A stretch of DNA of 64,000 nt from Tetramitus jugosus (Eukaryota > Protista > Heterolobosea), in the NCBI GenBank assembly GCA_937625935.1, contig OW569388.1:1-64000 (forward strand), given 5' to 3'. Under the pieces are notes generated by a model, which was given only the letters and a program-made list of their open reading frames with translations, was not told the DNA's origin and ran no database searches. The position numbers and the translations under genes were made by a program. Below are positions 1-5,619 of the stretch, one piece after another. Numbering within the stretch: position 1 is the first letter of the stretch; each line of letters begins with the position of its first letter.

Positions 1-745
1 CCTAACCCACAAACCCAAACCCAAACCCTAACCCAAACCCAAACCCAAACCCAAACCCAAACCCAAACCCAAACCCAAACCCAAACCCAAACCCCAAACC
101 CAAACCCAAACCCAAACCCAAACCCAAACCCAAACCCAAACCCAAACCCAAACCCAAACCCAAACCCAAACCCAAACCCAAACCCAAACCCAAACCCAAA
201 CCCAAACCCAAACCCAAACCCAAACCCAAACCCAAACCCAAACCCAAACCCAAACCCAAACCCAAACCCAAACCCAAACCCAAACCCAAACCCAAACCCA
301 AACCCAAACCCAAACCCAAACCCAAACCCAAACCCAAACCCAAACCCAAACCCAAACCCAAACCCAAACCCAAACCCAAACCCAAACCCAAACCCAAACC
401 CAAACCCAAACCCAAACCCAAACCCAAACCCAAACCCAAACCCAAACCCAAACCCAAACCCAAACCCAAACCCAAACCCAAACCCAAACCCAAACCCAAA
501 CCCAAACCCAAACCCAAACCCAAACCCAAACCCAAACCCAAACCCAAACCCAAACCCAAACCCAAACCCAAACCCAAACCCAAACCCAAACCCAAACCCA
601 AACCCAAACCCAAACCCAAACCCAAACCCAAACCCAAACCCAAACCCAAACCCAAACCCAAACCCAAACCCAAACCCAAACCCAAACCCAAACCCAAACC
701 CAAACCCAAACCCAAACCCAAACCCAAACCCAAACCCAAACCCAA
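1..745 (-). repeat. Telomeric repeat array (TTTGGG)n on minus / (CCCAAA)n on plus; chromosome left end
   Basis: Essentially uninterrupted CCCAAA hexamers from the first bases to ~745, with the C-rich strand 5' at the contig start as expected for a left telomere. A few variants lie near the tip (CCTAA at 1-5, CCCTAA at 26-31). Confidence 0.97.
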
Positions 746-1226
746 GTTAAAATCCATTTTCTCACCAAAATCACAAAATCATCTCAAAATCAATTTTTAT
801 GCAGGAATACAATGTCCACCATTGTAATCTTGTTCTTACTTCCTTGATACTTCTTACTAACACGTGTTACAACTTCCTCTCACTCAATCATTCGCTCCAT
901 GCATCTCTGCACTCGATGTCAAAACTCTCATTGTCATCCTAACAACACTCCTTCATCCATGTTGAACCTTCATCAAAGGAGTTTAAGCTCCTTCATCATT
1001 CTTTGTTATAAAGTATTTCCTGCCGTGTCCTTAGTCTTTTCCTTTCCCCTCGTTTCGGTTCAACTGGACAATGTCATTCCCAGTCGAGAATGCATTCATC
1101 AGGCTATTGTATTCACCGACTAAGCATTACAAACAATTTATGAAGGACTTCAATCTTGCAGTTCAACCGTCTCGGTCACAATGTATCTTCCTTCAGATGT
1201 TCGAACCTTTCTGATCTCAGTTCCAA

Positions 1227-1469
1227 GTTCCTCTGTAGAAATCTTTTTATGCGGAACTATCTGGTTCCTCTTAGACATGTGTTCATTTAGGCGGAACCAG
1301 CTGGTTCCACTGAAAAAGTCATATTACAGGCGGAACCAGATAGTTCCACTGACAAAGTCAAGTTTTAGGCGGAACCAGCTGGTTCCTCTGTAAAGTCGAA
1401 AATTTAGGCGGAACCAGATAGTTCCTCTGTAAAAAAGCTTTTCTAGGCCGAAATGGCTGGTTCCGCCTA
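1227..1469. repeat. Subtelomeric 39-40 bp tandem repeat with a 16-bp palindromic core GGAACCAGCTGGTTCC
   Basis: GCGGAAC..GTTCC units start at 1251, 1291, 1330, 1369 and 1408. There is a partial unit at ~1227 and a degenerate, inverted unit at 1446-1469. Confidence 0.9.
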
Positions 1470-1687
1470 TTTTTTCTCGACTCATCAGTCAATAGCTCAT
1501 AGAGATTTGGGTTTTCTGAGTTCAAAACCCAACTCCATATCACAGTTTGGGGGATAGTTCAGAATCTATAGTGAGTTTTTTCATACAAAGCTTAAGTTGA
1601 ACATTCCAGACCATAAAGAATACAAAAACAACCTTTACAACGTACAGTTGACTGTATTCAGCCAGTCTTGGCTAGCCGATATGTGAC

Positions 1688-1705
1688 AACCCAAACCCAA
1701 ACCCA
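1688..1705 (+). repeat. Interstitial telomeric seed (CCCAAA)x~2.5
   Basis: aacccaaacccaaaccca, in the same orientation as the terminal array. Confidence 0.8.
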
Positions 1706-1821
1706 TTATAATAAATCATAGATTTACTATTGTAAAGCATAGTATGAGGCTTAATAACACTCTCGGTATCAGAGAATCTATGTTCAATTCACTCTTGCAC
1801 CAATCATGACATAAAATTGAT

Positions 1822-2157
1822 GTTGGGTAAGGGTTTATAAGATGGTTGGATACATCTGACATGCATTCTCAATGAAAATAACTTCAGAACCAATAGATTA
1901 CGAACAGATATGATAATCAGGACGTAGAAATGCTCTTAGTCCTGAACAGTCAAAAAGAAAAAAGGTTGGGTAAGGGTTTATACACTGGTTGGAGGAGAAG
2001 TCAACCCTAAATGTACTTTTGACATAATTAGTTTGCGATTCAACAGAGATATAATTGAAGATTCATTGAATGACTACAGAGTCCCCTACGACCTATTCTG
2101 CAGATAAAATCAAAAAGTAAAAAAAGGTGGGATTTGGGTTTATATGCTGGTTGGAGG
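1822..2157 (+). repeat. Three dispersed copies of a G-rich telomere-like motif GTTGGGTAAGGGTTTATAnnnTGGTTGGA
   Basis: Copies at 1822-1850, 1965-1993 and 2126-2157 (variant GGTGGGATTTGGGTTTATA). Copies 2 and 3 share an upstream TCAAAAAGwAAAAA. Confidence 0.75.
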
Positions 2158-2769
2158 TCGATGCAACCGAAATCTGCTTTTCAACAGAAATCACTTGCAC
2201 TTTAGTACAGATACTATTGAAGGCAAGTTGATCCAATACATAGAATCGAAGGGCAAATATGTTAGTTTGAGGATGTATCACCCTAAAACACAGTATATAA
2301 GTCGTAATTAGTAGTCACAGATTATGATCAAGACAAAATATAGTTAACTATTGCTTGATTTCTTTGAAAAAAACCCATCGATCACATGTTGTCAATCTCA
2401 GAATGAGGTGAAAATTCCTGATCAGAATAAGGTTAGAGACAAAGAAAACAAAAAAACAACCTAAAGAAAAAGAATGTCAATCTTAGTCTATAGTAAGAGA
2501 GTAAAAACAACAAATTGAGAGTTGTAAGAGATGAGATTAACTGACAAGATTATCCAGTTCAAAATTCCTCCAAAAAAATGATTTTTACTGTATAACGCCT
2601 GCGTCTAACGCCGCAGGCAAATTGATTCCTTAGGGTTGAGTTTTACCTCAACTATTTGTTAAGACCAAACTCAACCCACTTTTTTTTTTTAGACGAAATC
2701 TTACTTCTTTTGGACTCCTCTCTCCATATATGACCATAATTCGTGGGTTTGGTTTAGGGACAAGGGAAT

Positions 2770-2789
2770 CCCAAACCCAAACCCAACCC
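2770..2789 (+). repeat. Interstitial telomeric seed (CCCAAA)x~3 at the broken end of the retrotransposon fragment
   Basis: cccaaacccaaacccaaccc directly abuts the RT-coding sequence; it translates as ...RRVGFGFG in ORF 2701..3039. Confidence 0.85.
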
Positions 2790-3838
2790 TTCTCAGCACA
2801 GCTGACACTCTTTGGTTAAGCAACCGAGTGAAAACCTTTGATAGACCGCTGAGCAGGCATATAGGGCGAAAGTTCCCTATCATCATAGGGCAGCCCTTCT
2901 TGTACGCCGGAACTATAACACACCTCTTCCATTCACACGGGAATTGCCCGGTCTCTAATATTCTATTGAAGAAAGTCATCAGCGCCTCTGCGAACTCAAC
3001 TCTATAGTCTCTTTCCTTGGTGTGTCTCAATTTGAGCATTGAATATCTTGTCCACCCCAGGTGCCTTACCGTTTCGCAGCCACTTTAAGGATTGCAGTAC
3101 CTCCTCCAACTTGAACGGGGGAAATATATCCTCCATACTCTCAGTCCTGCATCTCATCTCGTCTAGGAACGTCATGTCTGCAAATTCTTGTTCAAACACC
3201 TCCTCAAGGTAATCAGCAGCATGCTCAGCTACCTTTTCCGGGGCAGTGATCACCTTTTCTCCACTCTTGTAACTCTTGAATCTTAGACTCAGTGCCTTCT
3301 TGCCTGTGGCAGCATTGAAGAAGAATCGGGGGTCCACGAATTCTGTAGTTCTGGCTTTGTACAACCACTTGGAAAACCTCTTGTTAGCCCTACGGGCTCT
3401 TTCAACTTGTACAAGCCCATCGACAATCTTCAGTGATGCCAAAATACCTCTCAGAGTACAGTCCTCCTTGTATGCCTTGCAAACCCTCATGAGTTTCGGT
3501 GAACCGGTGTCATGGGAAGACAGCCGCTCCACTAAAACCATTCTATCCTTCAGCCAACGTCTTACTCTGCGGTTGTCAATTCCTCTCGCAATTGGTTTAC
3601 ACTTAGGAAACCTCTTTGCACTTTCCTTTAAGATCATAGTGATCCGGTCACATTGTTCATCAACATCCATTTCCGCCATGTTGATTTTATCCAGCTCCTC
3701 AATCACCTCTTTAGAGTACTCTATCCACATCTTGCTGTCCCTCTTTGGGAACTTGGGCTTTTCTTCTGTGGGCCCTTGTTCCTCCACCTTTGTCCACCAT
3801 ACCTTTACCATCGTAGGTATGTGATCACTCCTTACCCC
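2790..3838 (-). mobile_element. Truncated, frameshifted APE-type non-LTR retrotransposon (LINE) ORF2 fragment
   Basis: The APE C-terminal motif SDHIP lies in frame just upstream of 3811, followed by a linker region and RT motif 0 'GKAPGVDKI'. After a frameshift at ~3040 come 'FPCEWKRCVIVPAYKKG' and 'NFRPICLLSGLSKVFTRLLNQR' (RT motifs 1-2). No YADD is present. Confidence 0.92.
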
Positions 3839-4807
3839 ATAGCAACTCCACTGCCATCAGTGTCTGTTGTGCAGCTCAGTGCGGAGAACCGGCGAATTCT
3901 GGAGCAAGTGAATGTCACTTCTCCAGTGTTCGCCAGGGTGGAAAAGGAAATTGCTGCACGCAAAAGGTATGGTTTGACTGAGGACGAATTAGTAATTGTG
4001 GATGTGGACGACGACTCCAACAAGTGAAGAAGACACTCACAAAACAAGTCAATAAATGAGCAATCGTGCTTGCTGCGCAAGCACACATGGTTGTATGGAA
4101 AAAAATCATCTTTTTTACCGATGAGTTATGTCGGGGTCAGTGTCATCTGTTTCCATACCAATTTACTATTTCAAGGCGTTGTTTGATTTAAAAGTACTTA
4201 CCCTCGGCATGTTTGTTTTTTCAAAGCATAAGACGTATAATTAGAGGATGTTAGATAATTAGAAAAATCAAGGCAGCAAGGAAGAATTAAGTAGAAAGAC
4301 AAAGTACTACAATGTTTCCTGTGTTCATCTCTAGGTTAAATGCAATTAGACTCGAGGTACAGCGACTAAAAGAGGAAAATATCGAATCTGTTGCCAAGAA
4401 GCTCGATTTTGATGATCAATCCACTTCGTCTGATGAGTAAGGAGTGTTTATGAGGTCCCAGAAGAGGAGTGATGTGTATGCATGCGTCACACGATGTATG
4501 ATGGCTGACAAGAGCACAAAGAATAAAGAAATGAAAGTAACCCAGGTTTTAAAGTGGATCGATGACTACTTCAAAAACAAAAGAAAGATCATCGAGGACA
4601 AGGTCAAGAAACTAGAAAATGAAATTCAACAGATGAGATCTTTGTGTGATGTAGAGCTTGTATGAAGAAGCTGTCCAACTCTTGAAGATAGTCATTGAAT
4701 ACAACACCCCTCTTGTTGCTCAGTCAATCGAAGATGAAGAAAAGAAGTTGTATGAGGAAATTCAGCAAGCAATTGGAGCAAAATCCGATTAAACGGTGAT
4801 TTATAGT

Positions 4808-5000
4808 GGGAAGCCTCAGTCATTGTAGGTATTTTCATGAACAGAATTGATTTCGATTGTCTTGGTGAAGTTTGATATCGCATTCTTCTGCTGTTTGAGC
4901 TCATTGTATGAGTAACCTCTGTTTTAGTACGCACGTTCATCAGCAGGATTTCGATTGCTTTTGTGAAATCTGATATTGCTTTGTCATTCTCCATGCAGAG
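4808..5000 (-). pseudogene. TPR-repeat protein pseudogene fragment
   Basis: 'DKAISDFTKAIEI', then after a frameshift 'AY*NRGYSYNELKQQKNAISNFTKTIEIN...TYND*GF': TPR consensus with in-frame stops. Confidence 0.75.
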
Positions 5001-5619
5001 ATAATGCTGTAGACTCATACAATTTGACTGTCCGCTTGGAGAATTTTTGAATAGCTACTCAATGATTCAATATAGCTTTTGTTCCTATCTGATACGAGTA
5101 CTTTTTGTGATAATTGGTTCAAAAACTCTTACAAGATGGTCAATTCGTTTGATCTTGATGCGTTCCTCTGAAGATACCACAATGCAACAGATACCAAATG
5201 TCAGAATGTTTCTCTGGAAGTAAATTCAACGCTGATTTGAATTCGTTTACAATTCCAATCGTTCAACTTGGTTGAAACTGTGCCATAATCTCCGACTCGC
5301 TGAATACTCGTGATCCATGTTTGAAGAAGTGTTGAAACGTTTGAGAGTGTTCCAATAATTCAGAGTTCTTTCTGTGAAAGAAGACTCCACCCGTGTCACA
5401 ACAACATCTGCTGAATCACTCACTTTCTGTTTGATTCAACAAGTACGACGCGACTTTCCATTGCATCCTTTGGGATCAGACCATCATCGACTACGGGTGC
5501 CGAGAAGATTGCATTATTCACAACAACAAACGAATTCCATAATACGGGAAAAAGGCTCACCGATGACGTAAGTGGAAAAATGTGCACAAGCAACAAGGTT
5601 CCATGAAGCAAGAGATTCT

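Follow-up and report, generated by a model that had tools for sequence, protein, structure and literature searches.

Tailed non-coding modules stacked at the chromosome ends of Tetramitus jugosus

The window analysed here, 64,000 nt of Tetramitus jugosus DNA (contig OW569388.1), is the left end of contig 45 in an assembly of 26.35 Mb, 56 contigs and 112 contig ends. It opens with a terminal telomere, whose first 40 bases include a few CCCTAA-type units, followed by two non-coding blocks, A and B, each closed on its inner side by a short telomere-like tract, and then by a LINE fragment (Table 1). A first-pass annotation made from the sequence alone had proposed this layout, and both our reading of the sequence and TRF agree with it; the positions it gave for the two tracts also hold, but the second is not a clean (CCCAAA)3, its last unit being of 5 nt. 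No other sequence separates the tail of A from the 5'-truncated start of B, or the tail of B from the LINE fragment.

Table 1. Features at the telomeric end of the window
Feature	Position	Strand	Evidence
Terminal telomere, C-strand (CCCAAA)n	1..745	+	sequence reading and TRF
Block A, non-coding A family, full-length copy, 942 nt	746..1687	+	
Common 5' leader (about 70-115 nt) at start of A	746..860	+	
Array of 16-bp palindromes with 39-bp period, within A	1227..1469	+	TRF, split overlapping matches
Tail of A, 18 nt (fixed 17-nt core + 1 base)	1688..1705	+	
Block B, non-coding, 5'-truncated member of the F2/B superfamily	1706..2769	+	
Conserved element common to B and family F5	2597..2690	+	
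G-strand-like box in B, able to fold back on the B tail	2743..2769	+	
Tail of B, 20 nt, final unit a 5-nt variant (AACCC)	2770..2789	+	
LINE ORF2 fragment	2790..3856	-	ORFs and similarity to C16 ORF

The "broken LINE" of that annotation is real. The fragment carries minus-strand ORFs at 3811..3002 and 3039..2701, runs telomere-ward, and has 95% identity to sequence immediately upstream of RVT_1 in an intact 1278-aa ORF of contig C16; the tail of B thus cuts the LINE where its RT domain begins. It was to this broken chromosome end, the LINE fragment, that B was joined, and the DNA beyond position 2787 has no match at the other ends among the 36 read.

The whole assembly was searched for blocks A and B, and the fetched loci were merged into 38 segments from 36 ends, all turned telomere-left (ends are named by contig number plus L or R, e.g. 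C10R for the right end of contig 10). The survey accordingly draws on the 36 ends with A or B matches, on a few RT loci and on pattern counts made genome-wide. In the assembly, all A or B matches of at least 100 nt fall in the outermost 10 kb or so of a contig and keep one polarity, plus at left ends and minus at right ends; away from the ends there is a single match, of 80 nt, at 64.7 kb of contig 46. The junction at the 3' end of A occurs exactly 20 times in the genome, each time within 6 kb of a contig end (9 on the plus strand at left ends, 11 on the minus strand at right ends), and a pattern for the variant tail, with 18 matches of the same end restriction and polarity, added 13 further ends. 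At least 50 of the 112 contig ends bear one of three hallmarks: the A 3' junction, the variant tail or the 5' leader. Behind the innermost tract, about 18 ends have DNA without a match at any other end.

Internal telomere tracts were found in 35 of the 38 end segments. When telomere-like 15-mers with up to two mismatches were counted in these segments, 74 were C-strand-oriented and three G-oriented, the three being fold-back boxes within modules; no exact G-oriented tract of at least 15 nt was seen there. Reversed control patterns matched the genome zero to two times, and on both counts the polarity of the tracts is far beyond chance. The telomere polarity that the first-pass annotation had read in the two tracts of the window is thus repeated across the genome.

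Contigs with parts of A and B were found in the organism's own sequence runs and in three kinds of environmental metagenome, and read-depth ratios were consistent with DNA copy number; none of the runs recorded as RNA contained the stretch. Metagenome contigs from independent groundwater, soil and freshwater studies carry parts of A, of B and of the adjoining unique DNA (window 740-5200) at 90-99% identity, with differing neighbours at the B tail; close relatives of the amoeba in those habitats therefore carry the same modules. The A 3' junction pattern had no match in JGI metagenome contigs. An assembly artefact was considered and rejected, since the joints recur at dozens of ends and since parts of A and B appear with other neighbours in independent groundwater and soil metagenome contigs.

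Cutting the ends at tracts of at least 15 nt yielded 53 modules, which fall into about 10 families that vary in order and number over the 36 ends read. Clustering of the 53 by their seed-side ends, i.e. those next to the tract on the centromere side, gave groups of 18 (A), 13 (F2), 5, 4, 3, 2 and 2 members, the last being B. The seed-side ends are fixed within each family, while the telomere-side ends are mostly singletons; lengths range over 85-1017 nt for A and 66-1821 nt for F2. The 20 genomic copies of the A family, none of them more than 6 kb from a contig end, have the 5' end telomere-ward. Read telomere first, the stack is A, B in our window; A, F2 at C5R, C15R and C44R; F2, A at C37L; A, F3, A, X at C10L; F3, F2, F4, F5 at C49L; and a module resembling F4, an RT element and A at C48R. 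Constant seed-side ends, ragged telomere-side ends and variable order and number at many ends are what the first-pass annotation had anticipated from a search of the assembly; by the genome-wide search and the 36 ends read, the blocks are neither unique to one end nor a single invariant subtelomere. Judged by identity to their nearest relatives, outer modules are not younger than inner ones, and there is no gradient.

Full-length A copies measure 925-1017 nt, a range that reflects the varying copy number of the array with 39-bp period. The palindromes of this array (1227-1469) have CAGCTG or CAGATAG as their cores, and the number of units differs between copies; the array could be one of protein-binding sites, or an internal promoter. 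A protein-coding reading of the short ORFs in A was rejected for want of a family match: the short ORFs of A and B have no Pfam match. The 5' leader of A is common to 18 full-length modules from several families that differ at the 3' end, and invariably begins immediately behind telomere repeats or the tail of another module. Block B is composite: its bases 1-589 match the middle of 1.5-1.6 kb F2 elements, its last 475 nt are shared only with C46R, and its last 55 nt are a diverged 3' end of F2 type. Just proximal to the module stacks at the left end of C43, the right end of C9 and the left end of C5 lie long minus-strand ORFs of 314-443 aa, with C-terminal motifs resembling those of Crypton-type tyrosine recombinases.

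The internal tracts are short, 17-18 nt in 34 of 58, against 280-984 nt for the terminal arrays. The 3' end of A is constant and leads into the fixed 17-nt core, after which come 0, 1, 3, 6, 7 or 13 more bases; the core is present in all 20 copies and includes variant units in two. F2 modules carry a tail of 21 nt whose last unit is a 5-nt variant, and this tail sits immediately against at least 14 unrelated flanks. Two copies deviate, one by a point change and one by a shorter tail of 11 nt. The B tail is 20 nt with the variant unit in both copies, the one at C46R having the identical tail on a different flank. Telomerase-type joints, found at the 5' ends of truncated modules, are of another sort, their repeats being regular right up to the joint and free of the variant unit. 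Four A copies, 100% identical over 1017 nt, carry tails of 17, 20, 23 and 30 nt on four different flanks.

We read the tracts, from these sequence comparisons, as fixed tails that belong to the modules and not as scars of telomerase healing. The first-pass annotation had them as seeds left by a healed end, which is not borne out: the tails are fixed per family and joined directly to non-telomeric DNA. Had the recipient's own telomere stub invaded another end, regular repeats would be left at the recipient's unique DNA; this is not observed, and so the template seems to have had a physical end at the tail. The tail of one A copy at C8R (C8:642538-642561) consists of four AACCCT units (TTAGGG type) instead of AACCCA-type units. 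Units of the CCCTAA/AACCCT kind reflect either a telomerase that makes both types or relics of an older repeat.

An RT-bearing element lives at the same ends. Several ends show a weak RVT_1 match at a distance of 2-10 kb, its 5' end telomere-ward, and the RT protein was located at C48R, C3L, C10R, C17L, both ends of C9, C35L and C30R, plus one decayed interior copy in contig 50. The long copy at C10R (C10:603494-610633, minus strand), a 7.1-kb region whose reading was pieced together from three loci, comprises ORF1, a 1273-aa open frame, a roughly 330-nt conserved 3' UTR and a 19-nt tail. It is the only RT copy with the ORF1 region, which has a single match in the genome. The RT frame has no early ATG and overlaps the end of ORF1 in another frame, suggesting a frameshift or re-initiation; its motifs include DKN, LPKVHK..RPIV, YDFTALYTN and YIDD. 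Pfam searches of 880 and 993 aa of the element returned weak RVT_1 matches only, with no GIY-YIG domain at E up to 0.1; comparison to solved structures classified the RT no further than the weak RVT_1, and a language-model atlas gave a lead only, to rotifer RT clusters. Copies with 99-100% identity are 5'-truncated at different points, capped by telomere repeats, and have tails of 7, 10, 10, 19, 19 and 26 nt; at C48R one is stacked directly on an A copy. By these sequence features the element fits the description of an endonuclease-free Penelope-like element.

The first-pass annotation had proposed a search for longer RT-encoding relatives of the blocks, which succeeds in part: an element of the same anatomy exists, but it shares no sequence with A or B beyond the tail, whether in its 5' end, body or 3' UTR. 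The whole 7.1-kb region at C10R, compared with all modules by blastn at word size 7, never matched A, B, F2 or F3; it did match RT fragments and other families. The interior copy of the element (C50:166952-170539) is decayed, with stop codons and a 12-nt tail, and lies well inside its contig, which is about 330 kb long; a fossil chromosome end and the repair of an internal break are both conceivable origins. A fragment at C29R (C29:476434-478753; 84% identity over 635 nt), just inside a copy of the 5' leader, is oriented opposite to all the others. Intact LINE ORF2 copies of about 1150-1330 aa number one to three per contig, always interior and often clustered, for example at 49-64 kb of C12, 343-366 kb of C16 and 126-140 kb of C37; these copies might mark centromere-like regions.

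Searches for RNA structure gave little. No hammerhead ribozyme was detected in window positions 700-4300 at E up to 10, or at E up to 1 in 34 kb from ten loci including the RT element, and no other Rfam family matched A, B, the other modules or the RT element. Single-sequence folds of the 3' ends of A, B and the RT element were no better than those of shuffles, the 5' leader of A being the only fold to reach z = -3, and RNAalifold found no structure common to the A-superfamily 3' ends of A, F3 and C46R. Folding of the G-strand-like box of B on its tail is not significant by energy alone. The element at 2597..2690, common to B and F5, has an invariant 7-bp hairpin, then a helix between a G-strand-like and a C-strand-like box, then a T run. 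It recurs around 1500-1600 in segments L054, L056, L058 and L059, and its C box repeats the 5-nt variant unit of the tail. One compensatory change occurs in the telomere-like fold-back helix, and the hairpin plus helix is suggestive only.

DNA-level copying has also left its mark. Four ends carry identical 854-nt F2 copies, all cut at the same 5' position; C15R and C44R have in common an array of A plus a 432-nt F2, and C11R and C49L one of 659 + 1481 nt. The identity of these shared arrays stops exactly at a tail. In MoTeR arrays, identical truncations are taken as the mark of break-induced replication and unique ones the mark of transposition (PMC7367193); both kinds are present in this genome. 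Identical truncated arrays on several chromosomes imply that copying at the DNA level acts as well, and strand invasion inside an attached module would explain why distal parts are identical while the older joint of tail and flank is kept.

We consider it reasonably probable, judging from sequence anatomy, that the modules are non-autonomous and added by retro-addition, the enzyme probably being a Penelope-like RT, with later homogenisation between ends by break-induced replication. An RNA bearing the tail, read from the C-rich strand, would be laid on a free chromosomal 3' end, left either by telomere wear or by simple breakage, as in the cut LINE here. Copying of the RNA into DNA would then extend the G-rich strand; an early stop in copying, or later erosion, would make the 5' end ragged, and telomerase would cap it. 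Repeated rounds would build stacked modules. The RT of the co-resident endonuclease-free Penelope-like element is the likely enzyme, and once arrays were in place their whole distal parts could be copied from end to end by break-induced replication or gene conversion. From the anatomy we infer an RNA intermediate, the acting enzyme and the definition of the RNA 3' end. Retro-addition is favoured because the modules are end-restricted and polar, have fixed 3' and ragged 5' ends, templated tails and unique flanks, and share the ends with an RT element of the same design; such behaviour is also published for endonuclease-free Penelope-like elements (PMC8557442, PMC13159263) and for MoTeR arrays (PMC7367193). 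Against it stand the sharing of the tail alone with the RT element, the lack of a consensus 3' fold and of a ribozyme that could end a transcript exactly at the tail, the copying of arrays as DNA, the lack of an age gradient and the single long RT copy, whose RT frame has no early ATG. The proposal of the first-pass annotation that A and B are non-autonomous modules added to the end thus survives in so far as they are multi-copy, end-confined and modular; the end that received them was not one healed by telomerase.

Pure DNA recombination of the Y' kind, in which short or broken ends invade interstitial tracts or homologous modules and copy all distal DNA with no RNA step, seems unlikely as the whole explanation, even if part of the data suits it. 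It would account for the identical arrays with the same 5' cut on several chromosomes, for their identity ending exactly at a tail, and for the zero differences among four A copies; break-induced replication is moreover documented for MoTeR arrays (PMC7367193). It accounts poorly for a 20-21-nt tail with its variant unit flank-side on at least 14 unrelated flanks, where a stub of the recipient's own would leave regular repeats, and for truncation points that are mostly unique. Nor does it lead one to expect an RT element with the same joints at the same ends. The tracts themselves cut both ways: their lengths peak sharply at 17-18 nt, with a fixed variant tail, instead of spreading broadly, yet identical multi-module arrays sit on different chromosomes.

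The templated additions might instead be made by another enzyme, either telomerase switching to tail-bearing RNAs or a LINE RT, or the modules might come from a linear extrachromosomal DNA that ends physically at the tail; the Penelope-like element would then be a bystander. We regard this as improbable. The modules and the RT element have no 3' UTR in common, only one long RT copy exists, and the genome holds many intact LINE ORF2 copies, all of which would suit a bystander. But the LINE copies are in chromosome interiors and not at ends, no RT other than the Penelope-like element was found to share the tail, polarity and capping of the modules, and no extrachromosomal forms were seen among contigs matching the window. 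That the tracts are healing scars is very improbable and largely excluded. On this view telomerase healed each break, the new telomere eroded to some 18 nt, and end joining then captured unrelated DNA, with the modules as passengers. The direct contact of the cut LINE with telomere-like repeats and the clear capping of truncated modules by telomerase fit it. Against it, every family keeps one tail sequence, phase and length, which go with the module 3' end, the variant unit is missing from true telomerase joints, and random capture would not yield one orientation in 74 of 77 tracts.

Endonuclease-free Penelope-like elements are the closest relatives of telomerase and a model for RT-based maintenance of chromosome ends. 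On the small, fully assembled chromosomes of this genome, a terminal element with an RT occurs side by side with telomerase repeats and with about ten tailed families that lack an RT. Dozens of joints are readable to the base, among them chromosome breaks sealed by a module tail instead of a telomerase-made tract. This makes it testable whether a short telomere-complementary tail alone can recruit an RNA for end addition, and what shares retro-addition and break-induced replication have in subtelomere architecture. A bolder reading, which we offer tentatively and hold to be possible but doubtful, is that most chromosome ends are built or repaired by RT-less tailed RNA modules, joined to plain breaks without prior telomerase healing and then capped by telomerase. 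This would be a HeT-A-like arrangement, of benefit to the host and alongside telomerase, and would have the RNA 3' end defined without the hammerhead used by all other described terminal Penelope-like elements.

Among known systems, yeast Y' elements, of 5-7 kb, encode a helicase and spread by recombination, and the tracts between them are of telomerase type and variable. They resemble our arrays in the block-tract-block pattern, the single orientation and the presence at many ends, and differ in having neither a fixed element-specific tail nor a series of 5' truncations. HeT-A of Drosophila can heal broken ends, encodes Gag and has a poly(A) end, in a host without telomerase repeats. HeT-A (with TART/TAHRE) lacks an RT, depends on the RT of another element and joins chromosome ends head-to-tail (PMC5537684). 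The likeness is that of an RT-less element added head-to-tail to ends; A and B differ in lacking a Gag ORF, and telomerase repeats cap every stack here. Retrozymes are non-coding RNAs thought to use a PLE RT in trans (bioRxiv 10.64898/2026.07.22.740005); they are defined by hammerhead ribozymes and circular RNAs and are dispersed or tandem, whereas A and B have no ribozyme match and are strictly terminal.

The closest parallels are two. MoTeR1 and MoTeR2 of Magnaporthe oryzae, RT-bearing and RT-less, form mixed head-to-tail telomere arrays with 5' ends nearest the chromosome end; short telomere tracts lie between the elements, telomerase caps truncated copies, and spread is by transposition plus break-induced replication (PMC7367193). 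The arrays described here share the mixed RT and RT-less layout, the 5' orientation, the inter-element tracts and the capping. They differ in three respects: (i) MoTeR2 shares 860 bp (5') and 77 bp (3') with MoTeR1, while A and B share only the tail with the RT element; (ii) the MoTeR RT is of a different class and has a restriction-enzyme-like endonuclease; and (iii) the telomere-like runs of MoTeRs are at the 5' end, the fixed tract here at the 3' end. Endonuclease-free Penelope-like elements (Athena in bdelloid rotifers; Coprina in fungi, plants and protists) are terminal, with the 5' end telomere-ward and a reverse-complement telomeric tract at the 3' end, and form head-to-tail stacks in which 5'-truncated copies are capped by telomere repeats (PMC8557442, PMC13159263). 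A and B have the same terminal location, 5' orientation, 3' telomeric tract and capped truncated copies, and the RT element of this genome has PLE-type motifs without GIY-YIG. They differ in that A and B lack both ORF and RT and have the tail alone in common with the RT element, that no hammerhead was found next to the tail in A, B or the RT element, that about 10 non-coding families outnumber the RT copies, and that many tails sit on plain non-telomeric breaks. The suggestion of an undescribed capping or extension system thus gives way, on this comparison, to a more familiar picture: the system appears to follow the logic of Athena/Coprina and of MoTeR1/MoTeR2, and is not a new kind of system.
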